Counted from the stretch's first letter, positions 5,408 to 61,066 are shown. The stretch: 64,000 nucleotides of DNA from Paragordius varius (GCA_964247055.1 OZ176053.1:4898001-4962000); one strand, 5' to 3'. Translations and numbers: made by a program. Notes: generated from the letters alone by a model not told the origin.

Positions 5408-5526
5408 TAATACGACCATATCACGTTGAAAACACCGGTTCCCTTCCGAACACCGAAGTTAAGCAACGTTGAGCCCGGTTAGTACTTGGATGGGTGACCG
5501 CCTGGGAATCCCGGGTGTCGTAATTT
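5408..5526 (+). rRNA. 5S rRNA gene (solitary copy; may be a pseudogene)
   Basis: TACGACCATATCACGTTGAAAACACCGG...AGTTAAGC (A box)...AGTACTTGGATGGGTGACCGCCTGGGAA (C box)...GGGTGTCGTA, followed directly by a T-run Pol III terminator. Helix pairings TACGAC/GTCGTA, GTTC/GAAC and CCCGG/CCGGG are intact. Confidence 0.93.
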
Positions 5527-42900: not shown

Positions 42901-43784
42901 TCCCGCAAACGGAGGAACCACAAACACAGATGGTGTTAATCGTAGTGTAAGTTTTGTAACTTTTAATGAACAAGTTGCATCATTTTTTATAGATATAAAT
43001 ATTTGACTGTTAGTTTGCCTAATAATCCTTATGTACGTTTAAAATTTGTAAATGGGTAAAAAACCAGATAATAGGGTTAATTTTTTGGGTTTGGGAAATT
43101 AAATTTGTTAGCTATTTTAGGAAACCTATATAGTAAATCCATATTTCTATGATATTTACTTGCTTATTTTTATTTTTCATATAAGGAATTTGTAAATTCC
43201 AATGGACATAACCCGTCTCACCCACACATGAATGGTGGAGGCAGCACTCATAATCTACATTCAACCAACAATAACGTTAATGGTATGATGAGTTCTAACA
43301 GCACCCTTAACAGTCTTCCTGCAGGACCCGGCTCAGGCGGTAAAAAGAATGGAAACGTTCCGAATCCTGATAATAGAGAGTAATTATTATTGTTATTATT
43401 ATTACGATTGGAAAAATAAAGGTTTTCGGTAAAATAACATATAGTTTTTACAATATCATTCAAATTTTGTTGTTTTAATAAGTGGAGAATTTCCCAAATG
43501 TTTGTAAGTGTGTATATAACCTTTAATTTATTATAGATTAGTATTGACAAATTTATTTTATTTGGATTTTCTTTTTGGTTAACTCCTGATGCCAGGGTCA
43601 ATTTTAATTTAATGAATTTATTTTTTACTGCTTATTCACGAGGTATTTATGAATCTCAATAAACAACCTTAGTCATCGTATATATATTTATGAAAAACCA
43701 AAATTTTTATCTCATTTATTTAACATGCAAAATAGATTTATCGAGGAAAAAGATCGGAAAAAGGAAAAGAAACGATTTTTTTAA
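36906..43784 (+). CDS. SEPT7: Septin-7/Peanut-like septin. Exons: 36906-37010 (tentative), 37984-39073, 39969-40075, 40190-40290, 40400-40534, 40997-41114, 41603-41695, 41801-41897, 42028-42187, 42370-42508, 42782-42946, 43186-43379, 43736-43784
   Basis: All joins are GT-AG and phase-consistent. Motifs: GFANLPNQ, G1 [19 protein letters not shown] (SEPT7 signature), G3 DTPGFGD, G4 [12 protein letters not shown], a coiled coil, and a basic C-terminus KKEKKRFF*. Confidence 0.95.
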
Positions 43785-44205
43785 TCTCGACATATAAAAA
43801 CTTACCCAATCATACAACCTTACTCTTTAAAAAATCTTAACAACAATCCATACTTCCAGATATCAATAATATTATTTATAAACATTTATTCAATTATAAA
43901 CTAATTTATATATATTATAAACTAAATATTTTGACCTTTGTTAATCCTTCATTATAACAGCGCATATAAACATTTAATTTTAACTGTAAAAATCATTAAT
44001 GAAGCATTAGCTTATATATTTATGCATTTATAAATATACTTTAAATAAAATTATATATTTATTGAATTTTTTAAACCATATATCATCGTTCATTTTACTA
44101 ATCTGGCGTCTCTAAATATTTTTGCAGTACACCCACAAGTTGGTTTATATTTTCTCACATTAGAAGTAATAAAGGCCCCCTATCGAATTCGATATTACAG
44201 TCATG

Positions 44206-46529
44206 TAGACTTTATATTGTTAAAGATTTACTTTTTTTCGTTAATTGGGTATTTATATTTGGTAAAGAATATAAAAACAAGAGCTATATGGTATTACCAT
44301 ATCATATTCTTTAAAAAAGTAAAAAAAGTGTGGGGAAGGGCGTTGGAAATCTTTGGTAAAAAATGAAAATCTTAAAACATTGTTATAGGGGAATGGTAAT
44401 ATTTTTATTAATCTTTTAGCAAAATTTATATGTTGATTTTTTTAAAAATTTATTTCGCAGTACACATATGAAAGAGGATTGACGTGAGAATTAACATAAT
44501 TAATTTGATGAATATTTGTATGTTAAATTTTGAGAATATTATAGCAATTTATGTTAACATTTAAAATATTGTTGTTACGTATTTAGATGCGGAATTTTGT
44601 GGGTATTTATTCTTAATAATTTAATATATAGTAAAATGGGTATTTTAATATTATTTATGATTCATAATTAAATTCAATAAGTACTATTTTTCAACATGAT
44701 AAATACCTGTATTAATCAAAATTGGTATTATTATTAGTTGTTATTAGTAATTAAAATACAGGTTATATATTTGTGAAAATTTAATTAGATTATAGATTGG
44801 TTTTGTTTTTATGTTTTTCATGATTAATTTTTATGTGTTTACATTTTAAACAGGTAAAAATTGCGGTTTTTAAATTTAGTCAAATTTAATTTTTTTTGTT
44901 TTTTAGGATTTGCATTGTTGTAATTAATTACTACATATTGGAAAATTTAAAATACAGGTAAAAATGGCGGTTAATTTCAAATTTATTTTTTTTTCATTGG
45001 TAATTGTAATTAATTACATATTGTGGACATTTTAATAACTACAGGTAAAAATTGCAGTTTTTAAAAAATTTGTAAAAGTTTATTTTTTTTGTTTTTTTTA
45101 ACATTGTTAATTGTAATTAAATACTACATATTTGGAAATTTAAAAAAACACAGGTAAAAATGGCGGTTTACAAATTTCAAATTTAATTTTTTTTGTATCA
45201 TTGTTATTTGTTATTAATTAATAAATATTTAGGACATTTAAAAAACATGCGAAAATTGCGGTTTTTATTAAAATTTAAATTTTTAATGTTTTGTTCAACC
45301 TTGCTAATTTATTCAAATGATAGTAATTTTTACCTGTATATATCAATGTATCAAAATAGTAATTAATAAATTTTACTAATTTATTAAAAACGGCAATTTT
45401 CACCTGTTTATTAAATGTCCAAAATATTTATTAATTAAAAACAAATATCAATGATACAAAAGATGTTAAATTTTAAAAACTGGCATTTTCACCTGTATTT
45501 ATTAAAATGTTCAAATTAATTACAATTAACAATGATACAAAATAAAAAAAAATTTGAAATTTGTTATAAACCGCAATTTTACCTGTATTTATTAAAATGA
45601 CTAAATAAATTAATTACAAATAACAATGCAAATCCTAAAAAACAAAAACTCAATTTTTATTAAATTTATTAAAAACTGCAATTTTTACCTGTAGTTATTA
45701 AAATGTCCACAATATGTAATTAATTACAATTACCAATGAAAAAAAATAAATTTGAAATTAACCGCCATTTTTACCTGTATTTTAAAATTTCCAATATGTA
45801 GTAATTAATTACAACAATGCAAATCCTAAAAAACAAAAAAAATTAAATTTGACTAAATTTAAAAACCGCAATTTTTACCTGATTAAAATGTAAACACATA
45901 AAAATTAACCATGAAAAACATAAAAACAAAACCAATCTATAATCTAATTAAATTTTCACAAATATATAACCTGTATTTTAATTACTAATAACAACTATTT
46001 AAAATAATAATACCAATTTTGATTAATACAGGTATTTATCATGTTGAAAAATAGTAATTATTGAATTTAATTCATAAATAATATTAAAATACCCATTTTA
46101 CTATTTATTAAATTATTAAGAATAAAAACCCACAAAATTCCTCATCTAAATACGTAACAACAATATTTTAAATGTTAACATAAATTGCTGTAATATTCTC
46201 AAAATTTAACATACAAAATATTCATCAAATTAATTATGTTAATTCTCACGTCAATCCTCTTTCATATGTGCATTGCGAAATAAATTTTTTAAAAAAATCA
46301 ACATATAAATTTTGCTAAAAGATTAACAAAAATATTACCATTCCCCTATAACAATATTTTAAGATTTTCATTTTTTACTAAAGATTTCCAACGCCCTTCC
46401 CCCACACTTCTTTTACTTTTTTAAGGAATATGATATGGTAATACCATATAACTCTTGTTTTTATATTCTTTACCAAATATTAATACCCAATTAACGAAAA
46501 AAAGTAAATCTTTAACAATATAAAGTCTA
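44206..46529. mobile_element. Foldback-type element (long inverted arms with internal tandem arrays, no ORF)
   Basis: 44206 to about 45065 is the reverse complement of about 45670-46529, with scattered substitutions. Internal 95-110-bp units carry CAGGTAAAAA(T/-)TG(C/G)CGGTT. Ends are TAGAC...GTCTA. Confidence 0.92.
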
Positions 46530-47160
46530 TTGGTTGTTCCCAGGGTTGATAAGTCGTAAACGACTTTTTGGTTATAGTGTGCACTGTTAATTTCCACTAT
46601 TTCTATCTTTTATCGCTATATTCAAATCTTTCAATGTCATCGTTGTTGGCTCTTTTATGATGTCTAAACACATATTCGGTGATCAGCCTCGTTTTCTTTG
46701 CCCTTCTACCTTTTCAAATATTAGGCCTTTCTCTAAAGAATTAGACCACATAGCATCACCAAAATATCTTACCATTCTGTTATAAATTATCCTAAATATT
46801 TGTTTTATGATTTCTGGGGTATTTAGCTTTTTATTATTTGTTTTCCATGTATATACCAGAATCCCAAGTCAACAACTCCTTTCAAAAAACATTTATTTGT
46901 GTTTTTTTAAAGATTCCAGCTCCCCTTATATATGGTGACCGGAAGGACAAGACAATCGTAGCCTTGTTTTGATTTGAACTCCTACACCTATGTTTTCCAT
47001 ATCTTTATTAGATTGGTTATCGCCTCCGTAGCCAATCTTATACTTTGCTAGATGTTGAAAATCCATTCTTAGAGCACCCAAAACTGTTGGTTGATTGACA
47101 TCTTCTATTTTCTCATTCCGGGTTATATCATTTTAGAAGAATTATTTTAACATGATTTCT
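46530..47160 (-). mobile_element. RTE-clade (BovB-like) LINE 3' fragment, decayed
   Basis: Minus-strand frames: CLVLPVTIY, then EKVEGQRKRG..N.CLDIIKE..TMTLKDLNIAIKDRNSW....TI.KSRLRL, matching the RTE C-terminus (GRRRRGRQ..RWLD.I...DR..WR..VH.V.KSRTRL). Ends in an AACAACCAA tail. Confidence 0.8.
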
Positions 47161-50100
47161 TAATGCAACAAAAATAGGTGTATCACGATGGAGGATTAAG
47201 GGCCATATAAAATTTTCAATTATGTATCCCACAAAATTAGTTATTTTATCGATAGATTTGGTAAAAAAATAAATAAAATGAAAAATATTATTCAATATTG
47301 TTATATGTTAAAAATTTATTTTTATGGTTTTTTAATAATGATCTAAAGCCTCACATTTCTCGTGGTGCTTTTAGTTTTGGGACGTACGAGTCATTCATGG
47401 AAGATGGTAATTGGTCATGAACAAATGCAAATTCAATACACATTCGGGTGTTTTAAACAAAAGACCATCAGAAAATATATTTATTCCCTTTCGTGATCTT
47501 TTTTAAGAGCGATTTATTTTACAATATCTTCATTTATGATATTGGGCGAGTATTAATAGATTATATGGCTTAGGTGTTCAATTAATGAAAATATAAATAT
47601 AAAATGTGAACCTCTTCTCAAACTTTTTGTCACCATTTTTTTATTTTACTTTAATCTAAAATGGCAGATAACACATAATAATTTAATATAAATGTTTTTA
47701 CGGAAAATATTCGGTAATCAATGGTTATAAGAAATTGCTTTTAAATGGTTTTAGGAGATATCAAATTTTAGAATGGGGTAAAAAACGGTTTAAAATAAGT
47801 TCAAATATAAATATAATGTTGGATAATTAGATTGCCAAGTTTTTTAATTTCAATATATTGTGAACTCAAGTTTTTGGGAAATCTTACTTTTTATTATTTT
47901 TATAAATTAAAAGGTAAGGAAATATTAAGAGAGCCATTTTGTATATTTTAATATTTTTATTAAGAGTTACCAGCTGATATTTAACACCCATTGAAAGTTA
48001 ATGTTCTTAAAATACAAAAACGGGATTAAGCAAAAATAAAATATTTTAGATTGAGAAGACTTTTATAGGTAATAAAAACAGTTCTACTTCGATCCTCAGA
48101 ACTTCAACGCTTTATTACTTGTTTATTTATTCCTAGACGATTACCATTTGGGATAGTTTTGCACTCCATAAATAAAATTTCTACCTACTGTTTTATCACT
48201 TGGATATAACACATTTATTTCAGTCCTCCATGAATTGGGATCGTACCCCAGTATCGAAAATAAATAATTCGAAAAATATGGAATAAATTGATATGATTAA
48301 AGTTTGTACTTATATAACATTTATGAACCAAAATATAAAAAACATGGTTCAAAAATTCTTGATATCACTTATTTCAAGTAAAACCAAACGGAAAAATTTA
48401 GTCAACATGACGTGTAAATTAGCTAAATTTTAAAATTATACAAAAAGACCACTTTTTTGTTTATATCAATATTAGATGAGATTTAAATAAAAATTTTGAT
48501 TTAAGTTTTAAAATTAAATAAACACGATATTTTGCAAAAATGGCGTTATAGAATTTTTATTTTCAAAACTAAATTTTATATCTGCTTATATATAGTCTGT
48601 GCTATTTAGACGCCCTAATTTGAATTGAAATGTTAATTATTATCTTGAATAAAATTTTATTAAACATTATTGACCTGTCAAAAATATTTTTTACTCACTA
48701 ACTTTTATTGGGATAGCTCCAACATTAACACTTGGATACAACATATTCAATATTATCCTCCGATATAAATTGGGTCTTTCGGAATAGGTCTGGTTAAAAT
48801 TAAATATCTTATATTACGGAAAAAATTGAAACAATGAAAAAGTTTTCACTTATATTACATCGATGCACTGAAATATAAAAAAGATTTATTTAAAACTAGT
48901 ACGTATGAATAAACTTCATAAAATTTTAGTCATATGACATGTCTGCATTAGCTAAATGTTGATAAATCAATTTTAGCGTTATATAAATACGATATTTTGC
49001 AAAATATTTTAAATTAATGGCATCAAAATAGTTTGATATAAAACTTTTTTTAAACCTAAATTTTATTTAGATATTTTGGCTTATTTATATAATTTTAATT
49101 AGGATAGAAGTATTATATTGAAACCATTTCTTTCAGTATTAAGTTTAGTAAGGTCACTCAATGTCATAATTTGGTGTTGAAACAAACACTTATAAAATCA
49201 ATGCTTTTTTAGTTAAACAATTTAATAAAATCCAAAGAAGAAAATGGAGTAAAAAATTTTTAATATACCTTTAAAATATACGAATTTTTAATCGCTTTGC
49301 TCAAAAACTAATAAAATGATATTAAACCTTTTTCTTATATGCACATTGTATTTTAAAAATTATTATAATTAAAAGACTAAACAAATCCTCCTCAATATGT
49401 GGATAGAGATCTTTAGCGAAATCTAACTATCTTTTTTAATCTAAATTTTATATATGTCCAAATACCCTTTATACATTACATTTTTGTTATTTATACAAAA
49501 TGACAGTTTGGGCTCGTTTTCTAATCTTGATCCTTAAGTCGTAAGCAAACTACTCTTTTGAAAGTTGTTTTAATTATTTAAATAAATCCTCTTCTCCTGC
49601 ATTAAATAATAAAAACATATCATTACATTTAAATTTTATAGTCCCGAACTCGGATAATTTTAAATACGATTGAAACAAACAAAATATCAAATATTTCCTG
49701 CTCGCGAAATCTTTATAAATTTACTTGATCATATGATTTTTTATCACCTCTTTATCAAGTTTTCGTGCTTGATTTAAGTCGTGTAATAAATTTTCACATG
49801 AAAGCAAGACATGACTTGAAAAACTTGCAAGTCAAGTCAAAAAAATTTTTTTATCACCCGACCCATTATTTAAAAGCCTTCCACAGTTAGTTATTTATAT
49901 TTTTACATTAAATTTTTGCATGTCGTATTAGTGATTTAAAAATTAAAAGAATCCGGCAAAAAGCGGTGAAGATTTTTTTACGGTTTTGCAATTTGAAAAA
50001 ATTTTTTGAATCATGTCAATAAAGAAAGCATACTATTTTGACCCAATACTAAAAATATATTTTAACTAAAATTAATGTCTATGGGGTATAAAGCTATCCC

Positions 50101-50343
50101 AAATTCCCCCATTTTGATTTTTAATTTAAATACACATTATATCCAAAATTTAATTTTAATCAATCACCTTTAAAGAAAAAAACTATTATTGAATACAAAG
50201 TATCTGGGAAATCCGTTTAAAAATTTAAGAATTAGAGTTTTCTACCTGTTTACATTTATTCAATGATTCCTATTTACTCATATTTATCATCAGTCATTTG
50301 GATATTTTTATGTCATTGTAACATATGAACCGGCAATTTAAAT

Positions 50344-53300
50344 ATGATGAATATTTACATCTTTTATTTTACCTTTTCTGCTCTATTTTTTAGTATATCT
50401 GAATCTCATAAATGTGATATAGAACAAGTAAAATTATTTTTTACTTAGAAATGTAATTTCGGATATAATGATATGATTAATGTCCACTTAATAACCCACA
50501 CACATGACGATGCAGGATGGCTTAAAAACATTGATGAATATTACTTTGGAAGTATTGATTAATTCATTTGCACATAAATAAATTAGTTTACATTAATGCG
50601 CGAACAATGAAATTTTGATTGTTTTTGAACTCAAATTTTTAATTCAGAATACCTTAGTTCAAATTGTGCATAAAACAGTACGTTATATTTCTTTGTTGAA
50701 GAATTCATATAACTGAATAAAATAATTGATTATAAAATCATCGCATCATTTTTTTAATTATCAATAATTTATATTAGCCCGTAAAAACATTAGCAACGCA
50801 AATGTTAAGGAAATACTTAATTCAGTCTTGGAAAGTTTATCTCGAAACCCTGGCAGAAAATTTAGTTATGTCGAAGCGAGTTACATCCATCAATACTTAC
50901 ACGAGGCAAATGATACTTATTACAGGCAACGTTGGGATGCCATAAACCGTTTTATTCAAAATGGTGGTAGTTTTGAATTGCAAAAATATATCATTTAATT
51001 AATTGTATTAATATATACTTATTTGAAGGGATCGGAACTGAAACCGTTTTTTTATGTAGGGCGGGATTTTTGTTTTCTCAGATGTTAATTCTAAATATTT
51101 ATTAACAAATGTCTTCAGTTTTGGCTGTTTAAATTTTATCCGTTACACAAAGGTAGTCTAATTATGGTAAAAATATATAGTTTAATTTTTGTATGCTACT
51201 TCTAAATAAACTCAAAAATACTTTATCATCCAAATAAATTGGTAATGTCATCATCAAAGACTCCGAATCCGGAGTTTTTATACCACGAAGTGTTGGCTGG
51301 GGCATGAAAATGCGCTAACGGCAAAGGCCAGTTTCTAATGATCTGTAAAAACATTGGTTGTACACAAAATTGGTAATATAAATAATAAAAATCTTTTAAT
51401 GAAAAATAAAATTTCCTTTTGAACCTTGGGAATGCGATTTTGAGTCCAAAACGATATTAAGCATTTTTTAGTTGCAAAACGATTTTGGCGATCGTTCGAG
51501 TCTTAATGCTTGGTTTTAACAAATTATTTTCATTTTTACTAAAATCATAACTGTTTCTTAATCTAGGACAATTAGAAATAGTTTCTGGTGGTTGGGTTAT
51601 GCACGATGAAGCTGTAACCCATTATTCAGATATCATTCATCAAATGACTCTGGGCATTAATATGTTTCGCGACGAATTTGGAGGTAATTTAACGATTTTT
51701 TAACACTGGCACGCTTAGTTATTATCTAAAATACTAATAACTTTTTATTTTTAATGTAAGTTTCACATATTAGAGCATATACTATTTAACGTAACATTTA
51801 TTAACAAAATAAATTCTGTCTTCATAAAGGGCCATTTTTTGTGCTGATCATTTTGCCATTCTTATATCAAATATGGGGTTTTGTGACTTTTTTTATTGTA
51901 TTATATATTAAAAAATCGTGGATTTTTTAGTATTCTTTCCTCAAAATAATAACTATATATATAAATATTTAGAGTTTTTTTAAAATACAAATTTGTAGAT
52001 TGGTTTTATATACATGATAAAAAGTCAAAAATATGAATGTGAAATTTTTGTGCGATCTTATATAAAAAATTTATTTCCTTAGTGATAAAACTATTATCTA
52101 AATTAAAAATATGAGTTTATAAAATATTTTGTATAGTTCTATATCTTACAAAGAGTTGATGACTTTAATTTTATTTACTATGCAAAAAATGACTTTTTAT
52201 ACCTATCGTTATTTTTTTATTCAAAAATATGACTTATTGTTTAATTTCTATATCCTGTCATTAAATTTAAAAAGATTTTAATACCAGGGTGTTAAATTGA
52301 CCCAAATTTATATTTTATACGGCGCGCCTACTATGGTAAAACTTATAATTATAAAGCAAAACGCAAAAACCAAAAAAAATATACTTTTTTTCAAAGAAAC
52401 CTCATATATATATATATATATAATTGAGTGTGTTTCCAATTTACATCTATATTCCCCAATTAACGACTCACACGGTAAGTTATATTTAAAAAAATCAAAG
52501 TTTTAGCATATATATATATGGTTGTCTTTTTTAAAAAATTATATGGTTATCTTTTGGTTTTCACGCGCTTTGTCGGTATAACTTCAATTGTTTTAATATA
52601 GTATTATATTATTATGTTTTGTAGATTGTGCATCCCGATCTCTCCGAACCGGTTGGCAAATTGATCCATTTGGCCATTCGGCAGCCACTGCATACTTGTT
52701 TGGGCTTTTAGGGTTTAAGGGCAGTTTTTGGGGTCGTATTTCTGATACAGTTAAACAGGCACGAATTGATGATCACACGCTGGAGTATTGGTGGAAGCCT
52801 TTACCAAATTGTAAACAATTTTGTATTATTATGTAGCTTTTTGTGTTAAAGTAAATCAAAAGTACGATTTCGGTGTTATTTGAGTATAAAACTAATTTAC
52901 TGTGGGTAAAATATGGTTAAAGTCAATTACATTTTAGTGGGGTACGTTAGAGTACCGTTTATGAAGGCATTTATAATCGCGATATGTTTTTTAAATGTTT
53001 TAATATAAGTTTATCATTTGAAAGTTTTGAATTATTCACATAACTGTGAACTACATTACTAGGCGAGCAATTTGTTAACTAAGTGTGAATATTCAAAATT
53101 GTAAGAATATATACATTGTTCAATTTATAAATCTTTCATAATAGTTCGACATATGTATGCGCCAAACGTCCCTTTCAAGAAATCCGATATGAGGGATCAA
53201 ATTCATCAACAAGAAACATTTATCAATGAATTGCAATCTGGACCTAAACATTTTATATCCATTTTACCTCAATTATATCAACCACCTCCAGGGTTTTGCT

Positions 53301-56300
53301 TTGATATATTCTGCAATGATGACCCAATCCAGGTTGTCGATTAAAATAATTTGAAAACAAATAATTTACTTTTTCCGGATTATAAGCAGTAGGAAAAGGA
53401 AATTAATATGTTAAAACTTAGGTGGGACATATTTTACAATTTTAAAAGATATGCTAAAAAGTAGTTGTTTTAATTTATTTTTTTGTCGCTTTCTTGTTTT
53501 CTAAAGATAAAACTTTTGTGTTACGAGTTACATGAGAATTTTAATAATTGAAAGGTAAAAGTCAAAATTACTCATTTTAACGTCTCAGATAAACTCTTAT
53601 ATATATTTTAATAAAAAAGGGCAATTGTTTTAACGATATATTTCCTTTGTTTGTATATGAATAAAGGGTTTATTATGGTGGAGTAGTTTATTTTAAAAAA
53701 TTTCTCATTTAAATCCGTAAATAATGTATATATTAATACAAATGTTTACCCTTTTTATATCCTTTTATTAAAACCTATTAAACTGCTTAGTAATCAATAA
53801 ATATTAACAATAAATTAGGATGATATAAATGACCCATTAACCTATAATGTGGATGAAAGAATTGAAACATTTCTTCAAATGATGCTTATTCAAGCGCTCG
53901 GTTACGATTCCCACCACATTGCTGTCACGATGGGCAATGATTTTCATTACCAAGTAGCGGAAAGTTGGTTCAGAAATTTGGATAAACTTATAAAATATGC
54001 CAATATCAAGGTAATTTTCTTGATAATTGCATCGTAAAAATGTATACCACATAATAATGAGTTATACCTAGTTTTGACCTTTTTTGACCAGTCAAAAATA
54101 ATCGAAACCGGTTTGACTGCTTATAAATGCAATCATTTTTATGAGAAATATAAATCTATATTGTAAATAAAAAGAATAGATGAAGTTAGCCGTTTATTGT
54201 TTAAAACTGTCAAAATATATTTGTAACAATTGATGTAAATTATAATTAATATCTAGCGGGTGATAAAGATTTGTTTAAAAATTTTGACTGGTTGTTTTAT
54301 AAGCGGTTACAGTAGCGGTCAATAAAGCTTTTGTAACCGGTCCATCCTTCCTTATATAATTTATATTTATTTAAAGCGTTCAATCAATGGTTCACAAATC
54401 CGTTTTAACCTGATGTACAGTACACCACAATGTTACATGCATGCATTGTCAAAAGCTAAATCACCAAAATTTATTGATTTAACTCCAACCGATATTTTGC
54501 AAATGCAGGAAAATAATGACAAGTTATTAAAAAACCACTTACCTCTCAATCATATCCATCGGCGATTTAAAACGGAGCCAATTTTGAGGCAACGTAAAAC
54601 GGAATCTAACGTCTATTACAAAATTTTTATAAATAATGGCGAAATAATGTATGGTCACAGTGTCAATGAAACAACCAATTTACAAGATATTCGTATTATG
54701 GGGCTTCATGAACGTCAGTATAAAAGTGCTTGGCCTATATCCTCTGGAGGTGATGGATTCCCCCTAGTTAATTATGGAATCAACATTTGGACTGGTATAT
54801 TTTAGTGGCATTTTAATACAATATATGGTCCTGCTTTGGTTTTTATTTAATTTTGACAATTCTTTTATTGTAAATTTAGGGTATTATAGTAGCCGACCGA
54901 CCTTTAAAGCCTATGTGAGAGAAGCAAGTGCTATGCTTCAGGTAAAAATAAATTTTTCATCCTTATATTTCATTTAATAAATTAAATTATATGATTTTTT
55001 AGATTTGTCAAAGAATCGCGGCCCTTGCACATATTCAACAGGCCAACGATGGACATATAAAAGGTTTTACATACTTTATATTGTGCTATATTTTCAACAT
55101 ATTGTCTCCAAATGATAAAATATCGATATAAAATTCTCGAAAATAAGGAATGTATATTCTTTCTAACTAATTATTTAGGTAATACAAACCGATATAATTA
55201 CGACCAATCAATGTTAAGTATGAGTGTGGCTTTGGTTCAACATCACGATGCTGTAACGGGAACTGCTAAACAACAAGTCACTAATGATTATGCTAGACGA
55301 TTGTCCCAAGGCATAAAATTGTGTCAAGTATGTGTGTTTACCAATATGATATTTAAAACATCTAATTTCTCAGTATATTTTGTATTTTATCGATGTATGA
55401 AAGGATGAAATACACAGTATAGTTGATTATACAACTTTAAAGTGGTTTTTCATACACCATTTTTATCTAGGAAGGCCTGTCTAAGGATATGCTCAATCAG
55501 TGATTGCAAGATATAAATTTTAAGCTGAGCAAATAATGGATAAAAAACGACAAATGAAATTCTTATTCAAATTTAAACCTGAATTTACGTGACTTTAAAC
55601 ATTATAAAAAAACATTACTTTGCTCACTTCATTGATAAAAATTTAATTATGTAGGATATTTTAGAAGAAAAGGCCTGTAACAATTTATTGACGATATCAA
55701 ATATCATCTCGTCCTCCAAATTGATCAGTACATAAAAGGAAATGGCATATTTTATGCCGAATTTTTTTATTAATTTTTACATATTAATACCACTTAAAGC
55801 AAAGGAACTTATATAATTTTTTGTTTATTATTCATTGCAAAATATTTAAGAATTGCAAAATTATCTAACTGGTTAGGACTGTAATGATTATGGATTTCTA
55901 AACCCTTTTCATGTGCCATTAAATATTATTTTTAATAATCCTTATAATATTTTTTGCTTTAAAACCGTTGCGCTTAACCCTCCATTCATTTTTTATATTT
56001 TATCATTTACTACTTTTAAATAGGAGAATATAGAGACTCAGCTCCACGCCATAAACATTTTGGACAAAAATGCAAAATTAATAAATTGTCCTTTACTCAA
56101 TATCAGTGTATGTCCTTTCACTCGGAAGCCTTCCTCACAAGTAAATCATTTTTTGTTAATTAAAAATATATATCATATTACAATAGCATATATTTCGAAC
56201 AATATTTTCCAATATACTTAGTATTTTTGGTTTGATATAATTGTAAAAATTTATGTGTGATTAGATTGAATTTATGGTTTATAATCCATTACCATGGGTA

Positions 56301-59300
56301 ACTGAGCACCATATTAATATTCCCATCCATTTTGTTAATGGTTCAAATCTGCAAGTCTTGGAATTAGCAGAAGATGGAAAACATGTGCAACATGATTACC
56401 AAGTATTATAAGTTTAGTGTCTTTAATTTTTCTGGAATAACCTTTTATTCACTTTTATTTGTTTAGATTTTTTATATAAGTTATTTAACAGGATCATGTA
56501 GTGTGATACGTGCTAAGCTATGTAAAGCTTACTAGTTTTTTTTTCAAATACCCTTAATTAAACTGCATTTATCGTTGACCGTTGATGAAATAGGATGGTT
56601 AAGAAATTTGTTTAGTTTTGTTTTAAATTTTCATATAAATTAGTTTATTTTTTTGTTAAAATATTTTTTCTAAATATATGAAAAAATGGTAACTTTTTTA
56701 CTTGTTTTAGTTAGCTTCCATACCATTGTCATTAATTCGATTACCTGAATGGATTTCTCATTTGTCAACTAATAAACATTTTAACGGAAAAAGTTCCAAA
56801 TTATTGACTATCAAATGTCAATTAAAACCAATGTCTTTTTCACGGTAAACATATATTGTTGAAGGCGAACATTTTTAAAATATATTTTTTATGTAAAGTA
56901 AAATTATCATTATTTTTTCACTGTATAAAAAATCATATTTGTTAATTATCACGAATATTTTTGCTTAAGACCGTTTAAATGGGTATTAGTTACAATTTTG
57001 TTTATTTATATCTTATTCATAACACATTAATAATATTGTTTAATCTACTTTTATAAATTATATAAAAAAGCAATAAAAAACCAATACACTTAATATCTAT
57101 CCATCTATTCTTTAAATTAATTTAATTAAATAAAATACCGTTGGCTTAAATTTTTTTGTCTATTTTTAAATTAAATTGAACCACAAAAAATAAATGAATT
57201 CAAATACACATCACTATGCTCGGTATTATCTATAGTAAATCATTTTTTTATTTCGATAAAAAGAGTAAGTTAGAGGAATTTTTTGCATTATAATTTTGTG
57301 TTTTATTTTATCTATATTTTGCAATGTTTTAATATAATTTTAGTGTACTTATTAATTCGAAGACGGCATATATCAAAATTACAATGTTATATAAACTATC
57401 TTATACAATTGTTGACTAAAATTTTGTTTATTCATAGATACCAAATAAGGTTTACAAAAGATAATAATGGGCAAGGAACAAATTTGATTTCGCGTGATAA
57501 CTATATGGATACGGATACCGAAAATGAAAATTATGTCATAGAAAATGAAGTTTATTATTTAATTTTTTATATTTGTCAGCCCGACCGTCCATAAAAATAA
57601 TTTAAACTTGGAATTATTTGAACTTAATTTTTATGGTATTTAATTACCTAATGCTTTAGGCGTCTAATTATTTCTTATATATTGAAATAAGATCAATATT
57701 AAAGATTCTCTAAAAAAAATATTATTAAACATGAAAATATGGTTGTTTTTTTAATAGCATTTACAATTTTTTCGAAAGAGAAAACATGTGTATGTGTATA
57801 TTACATTTTATTAATTTTTTAACACGAAATCCACATTTTTATGATTATCAAAAGTAGTTCTTTGCAAAATCCAGTCAATATACAAAATTATGATGTCCTT
57901 TATATTTTTTTTCGTTAATCAATTTTAATTCAATCGTATATATATTAAATATATATATTTGACTATTCCGTTTTTTTAGAATATGCGCTATGAATTTTCC
58001 ATGGTACCTGCATCAAACCTAATCAGTGGAAAATTGTACAATAAAATTACAAACATTGCAACTAAATTGGACATTGGGTTTGCATGGTATGGGGCCCCTC
58101 ATCACCCAAAATTCCCAGGATCTGATGCTTATTTGTTTCGATCTAATACCTATGAAGCAAGAAATTTATCTTATTTCGAAACGATACGTCCTAATAGAGA
58201 AGCGAATGGTTATAAATTTGAGGGTGAACCATTTTACAACAGCAATAAGAATGAAAAGAATAAATATCATAACAGGATGAAAATAAGCAAGGTATCAATT
58301 TTAGGGATTTAACCATATAATAATATTTATATAATCATATAAAATTTAAACTAATTAAAATATCATATTATTTATATCCACTATTTATGTTATAAATTTT
58401 TATTCATTTCGATAAAATTATTATAAACGAGGATATAAAATTTTATTTTACTTTATATACATATTTATTAATGCGAAAATTTCTTTATTTCGAAAGTTAA
58501 TAGTAATTTAGGTGTCAATTATATATTTTTAAACAAATTTTTATTATTTTTCAGGGTTCCCTGTATGAACAAGCGACCATATTTGTCAACGAATGGTTAA
58601 ATCTTGAGTTTCGACTTTATAAAACAGGACAAGTTGATAGCTTTCAAGTGGATTGGACCGTGGGCCCTATACCAATGTGGGATGCCCTACCAAAAGATAT
58701 AGTTTTGCAGTATCAAACAGATATCACATCGTTCAAACATCAACCGCAACAAAGTTCGGAAGAAAGATATGGCGAAAAGTAATTTATTTTAACATTCAAT
58801 TTCTTATGATTCGGTAATAACTTTTAAAAATTAAAAAAAACGCAAATACTATTCAATAACTATTATTATGTTAAACAAAAGTATTAATGCACAAACTCTA
58901 AAAAACTTTAATATATTATTATTATTATGATTATATGACAAATAAACGTTTAAAAGTGTATTTAAAACTCAAATTTTAATTTTGGAATTGTTTTTCTCGA
59001 AATGGAAGACCATGAGCTTTTTTGGGGCCTTTTGAAATTCGGACAAAGAAGATTTTTTTAAACTATGTTAACTCTATTTCTCTCCGTCCGTATTAAAAAA
59101 ATTTATATATCAAAAAGTAGCAGACAATAAAATTTGTGCTGTTCATATAAATTTATTTGGCTATTTATAAAATTTATCAAAGTAATTGAGTTATTTAATC
59201 ATATGGTTTCCAGTTGCAAAAACTGATATATTTAATATCCATATAGATATAAATTGATTTTGCTATTTTAGAGAATCCCAATTGTTGCAATTTTTCACCG

Positions 59301-61066
59301 ATTCAAATGGAAAATTTATGGTACCTAGGATAGTATACCCAAACCATAAGAATTTACCAAAAACATCCAATATTAAATACAATAGTACGCATGATAAAAA
59401 ATTAAATTTTGGCAGGAAATTAAGTCCATCCGTTTTATTGGCAAAACTTGAGCAAAATGACCCACGAATTCGACTTAATTATGTGGCTAAGCAATATTAC
59501 CCTATGACATCTAGAGTCTTTATCCGTGATGAAACAGTAACTTAGTTTTATTTTATGTAAGTATGATACAGTAAAAGCACAAAAATATGTGTTAAATAGT
59601 CGCCTTTCAATCGGTGTTTTGGAAATGATTAACCGAAAAAATATTTAATATATATTAGTTGCAGCTAATATATTATTTATATGAATTTTTTTGGCAACAA
59701 TCGTGCTTTTTCCTCTTATGCAATTATAAAAAAATACATATTTTTAATGATAGAAAACTACAGAGCATCACAATATTCGTCGACAGTTTGGCATTATATC
59801 AGATAGATCTCAAGGAGTTACATCTCATAAACCTGGTGGGATTGAAATAATGGTACATAGGCGACTTATTGAGGATGCTGGATTGGGTGTTGATGAAGCC
59901 CTGAATGAATTAGGTCCAGATAGAAAAGGTTTGTATATTTGATTAATTTTCTGTAAAGAAACTCCAATTAATCTTAATATAATTTTTCTGCTAGTAGGTC
60001 CCTTTTTTATAAAACCAATTGGGAAAATTGACTGACTATTTAAAAGGACAAAATGTGGTTTTCGGACATTTCAGCTTTACTTTGTGACAATAATTTTAAT
60101 TTATTTATTTGTCAAAAACATAATTTAAGATCCTACATAATTAAAACATTGTTTGATCATCCGTTTGCTTTTATAGGATTAATCGCTCGGGGAAGGCATA
60201 TCTTAGTATTTGACACTCCATCAAAAACAAATGCTCTTATGACTAAACTGGCACAAGAAAATTATTTGAAACCACATCTTATGTTTGTACATAATAATGG
60301 AAAGATAACGAAAAATTCCTTTAGAATGGTGAGTGTGAAAAATGATAATATAAGTTTAATTATATATTCATTGTTAAATTTTAACCCCTTTAACGAAACC
60401 GTATTAACTTATATAATATATTTTACTACAATATTCGTATGAGGTTGAGGTGAGTTCTGGCTTAATGTATTAAATGAGAAATTTGTTATAAAACTATTTT
60501 GCTTTATTTTATTTAAAAATGTTTTTAGTATGAAATGATACTTTACGAAGCCCTACCACCCAATATTAATATATTGACCTTCACTGTGTGGAATGATAGA
60601 CAAGTATTATTACGACTTGAACACATTTATGCTCCATATGAACACGTTACACTTTCTCTCCCGGTCTATTTGGATTTAAATGTAAGATTTTTGCAATAAA
60701 TTTCATATAGGCTAGATTTATAGCCTTCCAAATTTTATTTTTAACTGATACCCAAAATTTTTTCATGTTTAATGATGTTGAGATATGAGAAAGTTTACAA
60801 TATTTATTTATTCACAGATCAATCGATAGGGTTTTGTTGTGAAATATTTTATTTTATAGAATATATTTCGGATAAAATTCGCGCTTATTAAATCTGTTAC
60901 CTTGGATGGGGGTCCCTTAGAATCACAACAACAATATGATTGGTTCTCTCAGAATAATGAGTACCTAAAATCTCCACCTTTAAATATGGAATCCTTCAAT
61001 TCATCCACGGAATATATAATTATGTTAAAACCTTTGGAAATTAAATCCTACATATTGTATTTGTAA
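50344..61066 (+). CDS. MAN2B1: Lysosomal alpha-mannosidase (GH38), 22 exons: 50344-50427, 50449-50551, 50778-50963, 51567-51683, 52625-52810, 53145-53332, 53819-54010, 54377-54794, 54880-54941, 55003-55063, 55179-55327, 56024-56140, 56265-56402, 56711-56844, 57438-57549, 57980-58291, 58555-58778, 59272-59536, 59754-59928, 60177-60328, 60529-60681, 60860-61066
   Basis: Signal peptide, [26 protein letters not shown], nucleophile motif WQIDPFGHS, acid/base motif [46 protein letters not shown] and LLRLEH. All joins are GT-AG and phase-consistent. Confidence 0.96.
51240..51375 (+). mobile_element. Possible Tc1-like transposase remnant in mannosidase intron 3
   Basis: GC-richer island reading IPRSVGWG, then after a frameshift [11 protein letters not shown] (like SVMVWG..S.NG.G.L). 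Confidence 0.3.

Follow-up and report, generated by a model that had tools for sequence, protein, structure and literature searches.

The introns of Paramecium and other ciliates are tiny, at about 25 nt, those of Stentor are only 15-16 nt long, and in Paramecium stopless introns with a length divisible by three are depleted. Introns shorter than about 30 bp had been thought absent from animals, according to a study of 51 animal genomes (Mol Biol Evol, September 2026; PMC13644364), which found introns of <30 nt only in myxobolid myxozoans and in Dicyema japonicum. As described there, the median intron in those genomes is 22-27 nt long, the 5' signal is reduced to approximately GTA, and weakly conserved A residues are found at a distance from the 3' AG that grows with intron length. 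No hairworm is named in the main text of that study. The literature searched contained no relevant hairworm or Nematomorpha genome paper mentioning introns and no record of introns of <30 nt in hairworms; the Gordionus genome preprint, which gives a BUSCO completeness of 71.6%, does not mention them. A first-pass annotation of the DNA analysed here had listed ciliates, chlorarachniophyte nucleomorphs, microsporidia and dicyemids as the main lineages with introns this short; to this list the myxobolid myxozoans have to be added (PMC13644364).

The present locus lies in the genome of the hairworm Paragordius varius. The assembly comprises 110.5 Mb in 44 contigs, which is less than the 200-300 Mb cited for studied hairworms, and the nuclear GC content, taken from the window (the whole stretch of 64,000 nt that was analysed, C4:4898001-4962000), is about 0.27, as compared with 26.93% in Gordionus montsenyensis. 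The mitochondrial contig C44 (15,693 bp) carries a COX1 gene in which TGA is read as sense and contains perfect zero-loop hairpins throughout, with arms of up to 208 nt (e.g. L016:5104-5519 and L016:6752-7451). These hairpins correspond to a trait reported for hairworm mitochondrial genomes, which PMC10380579 describes as rich in long perfect inverted repeats. An array of palindromes spaced at 72 nt was also seen on C44. In the window itself, a complete 5S rRNA gene (5408-5526, + strand; Rfam RF00001, 113 bits) was located among protein-coding genes. Two inverted repeat copies, at 44102-44311 (+) and 46424-46609 (-), lie between a septin gene and an alpha-mannosidase gene; in both of them the frame ...VKDLLFFVNWV.IFGKEYKNKSYMVLPYHI.. 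can be read, and they are likely remnants of transposons.

The mannosidase gene spans approximately 50344-61000, and its 5' part has the following features, given in window coordinates.

50344..50427, + strand: coding part of exon 1, with the start codon(s) and a 28-residue signal-peptide-like ORF, ending in phase 0
50428..50448, + strand: micro-intron of 21 nt, GTAA...TTAG, phase 0, length a multiple of three, with TAG in frame at 50446-50448
50443, + strand: candidate branch-point A, by inference, the sixteenth base of the intron (in TTTAC), which ends 5 nt further on
50449..50551, + strand: exon 2, 103 nt, with a conserved Cys and the start of the GH38 N-terminal domain; phase-1 end, donor GTATTG
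50552..50777, + strand: intron 2, 226 nt, after which exon 3 continues at Pfam positions 22-67
50778..50966, + strand: exon 3, with an approximate 3' border (+/-3 nt)

The frame of exon 1 is opened by ATGATG at 50344-50349, is closed upstream by a stop codon TGA (50326-50328) five codons before the ATG, and runs for 28 codons to 50427. It is followed at 50428-50448 by the sequence GTAAAATTATTTTTTACTTAG, which starts with GTAAAA, ends with CTTAG and has a GC content of 10%, and the reading frame resumes at 50449 with the first codon of exon 2. The first-pass description of this segment, as a 21-nt GT-AG sequence with an in-frame TAG between a signal-peptide exon and a conserved exon, was thus reproduced base for base, as were the 103 nt given for exon 2 and the statement that the other GT dinucleotides of exon 1 are in the wrong phase: those at 50393 and 50414 are in phase 1 and cannot be joined to the phase-0 acceptor. 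Excision of the 21 nt leaves phase 0 on both sides, removes the in-frame TAG and produces one continuous frame with the junction ...CDIEQ/KCNF..., in which the mature N-terminus directly follows the signal peptide (here and below, a slash marks the position of the removed segment). With a length that is a multiple of three, the single in-frame TAG alone would forbid a coding reading of the 21 nt. If the segment were retained, this TAG would stop translation after 34 residues. We consider, with a probability of about 0.87, that 50428-50448 is a genuine U2-type GT-AG spliceosomal intron and the first intron of a lysosomal-type GH38 mannosidase gene.

The GH38 N-terminal, middle and C-terminal domains (PF01074, PF09261 and PF07748) were followed exon by exon, and since all three are present, the lysosomal-type alpha-mannosidase gene is taken to be intact. 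Positions 1-21 of PF01074 begin inside exon 2, exons 3-5 cover positions 22-67, 73-115 and 114-163 of the GH38 N-terminal domain, and the HxHDD metal/catalytic motif is present as HTHDD in exon 2. The best PDB match is bovine lysosomal alpha-mannosidase, with exon 2 aligning to residues 11-38 of the mature chain 1o7d_A. The mature bovine enzyme starts about 4 residues before the point matching the first codon of exon 2, so that what is needed upstream of exon 2 is essentially a signal peptide only. Removal of a 21-nt GT-AG intron appears to be the only reading that would give this enzyme one. The conserved Cys is in exon 2 in human MAN2B1 as well: variants c.164 (Cys55) and c.231 are assigned to exon 2 and c.283 (Ala95) to exon 3, consistent with a human exon 2 of the same extent as the one here (PMC4465300). 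The first-pass annotation had given for MAN2B1 a phase-0 intron at the same place and a 103-nt exon 2; the limits of exon 2 fit these assignments, but the exon 1/2 border is not fixed by them, and its exact position was not found in the literature searched, which gave only exon assignments of variants. Word searches with exon 3 and with the exon containing WQIDPFGHS gave no candidates in the allowed length range, and a representative protein search with exon 3, a poorly conserved query, gave three weak and irrelevant matches; no protein of this species appeared in any of these searches. Rfam showed no match at the intron locus. Besides the 21-nt intron, the gene has one of 85 nt (54795-54879) and one of about 0.9 kb (~51700-52627), so the earlier remark that introns of about 20 nt and about 1 kb in one gene would be unusual applies to this gene.

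The evidence for exon 1 comes from a paralogue, from composition and from position, not from homology, as signal peptides are not conserved. The hydrophobic core of the exon-1 ORF has a mean Kyte-Doolittle value of 1.81 over 12 amino acids, compared with an average of 1.06 over 335 ATG-open frames taken at random from the window. AT-rich DNA readily yields hydrophobic ORFs, and chance examples occur in the window, including one inside the mannosidase gene at 54889. With some 7 kb of repeat-rich intergenic DNA upstream, the ORF at 50344-50427 could therefore be fortuitous, and a true first exon further upstream, or a non-coding leader, could be joined to the 50448 acceptor through a long intron. 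This we regard as very unlikely. A scan of 43400-50428, i.e. of the ~7 kb between the approximate end of the upstream septin gene and exon 2, showed that, among signal-like ORFs with an ATG start, only that of exon 1 runs in phase into a GTA[AT] donor; a different upstream first exon, which the first-pass annotation had named as an observation that would count against its model, did not appear there in signal-like form. The chance of such an arrangement can also be counted. A signal-like ATG ORF ending at a GT located 18-33 nt before an AG is found at about 0.5% of the AG sites in the window, and at about 0.16% when the phase is required to fit.

When the genome was searched with exon 2, only the gene itself and one other copy were found, with no processed retrocopy. 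The other copy, on a different contig (G000:C1:15004737), has an exon 2 that is 68% identical. Upstream of it is a signal-like ORF, ATG...MLTMQIYLLFLISIISPSIYLAKDCSYTK, followed by a 30-nt intron and then by KCNPTNPNMINIHLIPHTHDD. The 30-nt segment, GTAATTAAAGGCTTTTTATGTGTATCTTAG, has the form GTAA...TTAG, contains a TAG in frame, and is inserted at the same codon and in the same phase as the 21-nt intron. The signal-like peptide of the paralogue is unrelated to that of the window copy and reaches a Kyte-Doolittle value of 2.38. Both genes have a Cys five residues before the donor, and both read C-x4-K-C-N when spliced, whereas the unspliced spacing would differ by 3 residues. The best branch-point candidate in the paralogue intron is A18. 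Since two independent cases are found at homologous sites, at about 0.16% per AG site, chance is not the explanation; the joint probability of the two arrangements is of the order of 1e-6, which also argues against a fortuitous ORF in the window copy. The two genes are about 55% identical in aligned coding blocks and most exon borders are common to both, indicating that the duplication is old and that the micro-intron has been retained.

The paralogue also bears on the possibility that the 21 nt are kept in the mRNA, the gene being a pseudogene, or the TAG being read through, or translation starting without a signal peptide at the internal Met of NDMINVHL. The segment is indeed a multiple of three and open except for its terminal TAG, and exon 2 does hold an in-frame ATG. 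Nevertheless, retention seems very unlikely to us. The rest of the gene is intact, with its three GH38 domains; both paralogues would have to be defective in the same way at the corresponding site; the inserts, of 7 and 10 codons, have only their GTAA and TTAG ends in common; and the bovine enzyme also has the internal Met, as a conserved structural residue. Moreover, the in-frame stops of conserved genes in this genome fall within GT-AG micro-segments, against a use of TAG as a sense codon.

Other differences between the mannosidase genes were noted in the course of the comparison. The 85-nt intron of the window copy splits WTG/YYSSRP, while the paralogue is uninterrupted there (G000:C1:15011943-15012089), meaning that this intron was gained or lost between the paralogues. 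A length difference of 21 nt between the paralogues at 58687-58689 was considered as a further intron and rejected, as it is a coding indel. At 59336-59479, within one open exon, the window copy is 108 nt (36 codons) longer than the paralogue, owing either to an insertion of coding sequence or to a stopless intron that was not recognised. A third GH38 gene, G000:C7:6496427-6502518 (-), was found from matches to exons of the GH38 N-terminal domain only, and its N-terminus is not of the lysosomal type.

Splicing of the 21 nt as an intron is further favoured by other genes of the same genome. Another 23 introns of 21-31 nt were found in PDCD6 and in nine small-GTPase genes, each of them restoring a strongly conserved motif. 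In PDCD6 (within G000:C4:6797001-6807000, minus strand), introns of 26, 22 and 22 nt are required. The frame changes twice, at ...LSNG/TWEPF... and at ...QTQG/FRLSD..., each change coinciding with a 22-nt GT-AG segment, and in PDB alignments to ALG-2 neither of these segments causes a gap or an overlap (3aak_A residues 14-36, 36-104 and 103-140). The GT-AG segment of 26 nt is located 5' of both. The small GTPases were collected by a whole-genome search with the Pfam Ras model, in which many exon matches were only 1-26 nt apart, and the nine genes examined contained 20 introns of 21-31 nt. Their removal restores motifs such as the following.

NYVADIEVDGKT/VELALWDTAGQE
ERYRAITS/AYYRGAVGALLVYD (ERYRAITS/AYYRG)
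GVGKS/SLLLRF
STIG/VDFK
MYEE/FVEDYEPTKADSYRK (MYEE/FVEDYEPT)
AAIR/DNYFRSGEGF
MYLEDRT/VRLQLWDTAGQERF

A RhoA-like gene (G000:C5:8097580-8098142, -; locus L007) has an intron of 23 nt and a second one of 24 nt that is in frame and stopless. This second GT...AG segment, between KWTPE and VKHFCP, would insert VFLHIMMK if retained and is absent from 119 of 119 homologues carrying the motif; a word search with the exon gave 7900 matches, none of which came from this species. A Ral-like gene has a 21-nt phase-0 intron whose last codon is an in-frame TAG; its architecture is exactly that of the mannosidase intron. The densest cluster of micro-introns in the sample is that of a Rab18-like gene (G000:C5:5361143-5361730, +; locus L010), with five introns of 21, 21, 22, 22 and 22 nt within about 590 nt. 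A survey of the CCT family gave no clear micro-introns, the introns there being at least 62 nt long; the class is therefore common but not universal across genes.

The recurrence of such segments also bears on the suspicion that the 21 nt are an artefact of assembly or polishing. Low-complexity AT-rich runs are prone to indel errors, although nothing specific to this site points that way. An artefact would not be expected to have GTAA and TTAG as its ends and to fall on a codon border, nor to turn up again at this codon in the paralogue, which is on a different contig, and, in similar form, as 23 segments of other genes. We judge an origin of this kind to be extremely improbable. Regarding the 21 nt as a spliced intron, the first-pass annotation had held that such an intron was required in the mannosidase gene, and the 30-nt intron of the paralogue, together with the three other 21-nt introns that restore conserved GTPase motifs, lends support to this claim as far as it can be judged from genomic sequence.

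The lengths of the micro-introns were distributed as follows (n = 24, mannosidase introns included).

21 nt: 4; 22 nt: 5; 23 nt: 2; 24 nt: 2
25 nt: 3; 26 nt: 2; 27 nt: 1; 28 nt: 1
29 nt: 1; 30 nt: 1; 31 nt: 2

The shortest length, 21 nt, is thus represented by 4 of the 24, and none lies below it. The other introns of the sampled small-GTPase genes are about 46-86 nt long, or from >250 nt to thousands of nucleotides, with none at 32-45 nt (these values are approximate, being taken from HMM coordinates), and by this gap the class looks discrete rather than the tail of an ordinary distribution. The mannosidase intron, inside the length range of the class and matching its consensus GTA(T/A)...TAG, belongs to this discrete class of 21-31 nt, which is used alongside introns ranging from ~46 nt to several kb; both kinds are often found in a single gene. 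It is accordingly one more member of the class and not a singular oddity, standing at the size minimum and backed by its paralogue. Lengths that are a multiple of three were found for 8 of the 24, and 4 of these 8 have no in-frame stop. In this small sample, unlike in Paramecium, there is consequently no apparent avoidance of stopless introns of such lengths.

Sequence signals were taken from 21 micro-introns, which together have a GC content of 0.196 (~20%). Position 3 is A in 17 of the 21 and position 4 is T in 15, and at the other end position -3 is T in 17. Counting from the 5' end, a T-rich stretch at positions 11-14 precedes positions 15-17, at which A reaches 62%, 67% and 57% and G is absent, with T next, at 18-19. 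Counting from the 3' end of these introns gave no signal of comparable sharpness. The enrichment of A at 15-17 suggests that the 5' splice site and the branch point are separated by a roughly constant 15-17 nt. The corresponding candidate in the mannosidase intron, A16 in TTTAC, matches yUnAy and is followed by only 5 nt before the intron ends. Judged by model organisms, this puts the branch point very near the 3' splice site, which counts against the intron reading.

The anatomy of the mannosidase segment, its position conserved in the paralogue, and a genomic class of micro-introns with its own consensus were all observed in this analysis. As for the mechanism, splicing may proceed by ordinary U2-type chemistry under intron definition, with recognition through a short GTA(T/A) 5' site. 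The distance from the 5' end to the branch A would be about 15-17 nt (A16 for the mannosidase), with only about 5 nt more to a TAG 3' site, and the floor of 21 nt could then represent the minimal distance from 5' site to branch point plus the minimal distance from branch point to AG.

Compared with the systems described at the outset, the hairworm micro-introns are like those of ciliates in their size range, their GTA...TAG ends, their AT-richness and, presumably, their recognition by intron definition, but ciliates have essentially only tiny introns. With the introns of myxobolids and Dicyema, as given in PMC13644364, they have in common that they are animal GT-AG introns of <30 nt with a 5' signal of approximately GTA, and that the position of the A is roughly fixed from the 5' end, here with its enrichment at 15-17. 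In those animals, however, the same source describes tiny introns as the norm, as seen in the median, and the genomes as compact, whereas in the hairworm, with its repeat-rich genome of 110 Mb, a discrete tiny class exists beside introns of hundreds to thousands of nucleotides in one and the same gene.

On balance, we slightly favor the view that hairworms are a third independent animal lineage with introns of <30 nt, characterized by a discrete class of 21-31 nt with a hard floor at 21 nt (a fixed ~15-16 nt between 5' site and branch point and another ~5 nt up to the AG), present beside kilobase introns in a repeat-rich genome. If this is true, one animal spliceosome processes introns of 21 nt and of kilobases in the same transcript, and 21 nt would be an empirical lower limit against which the spacing of 5' site, branch point and 3' site could be tested directly. 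Such genes would be broken by gene finders and aligners whose minimum intron length is set above about 30 nt; where annotation software forbids introns this short, genes like the mannosidase are split or are left without their signal peptide. Low BUSCO completeness and the 'rampant gene loss' reported for Nematomorpha could then in part be artefacts of annotation.
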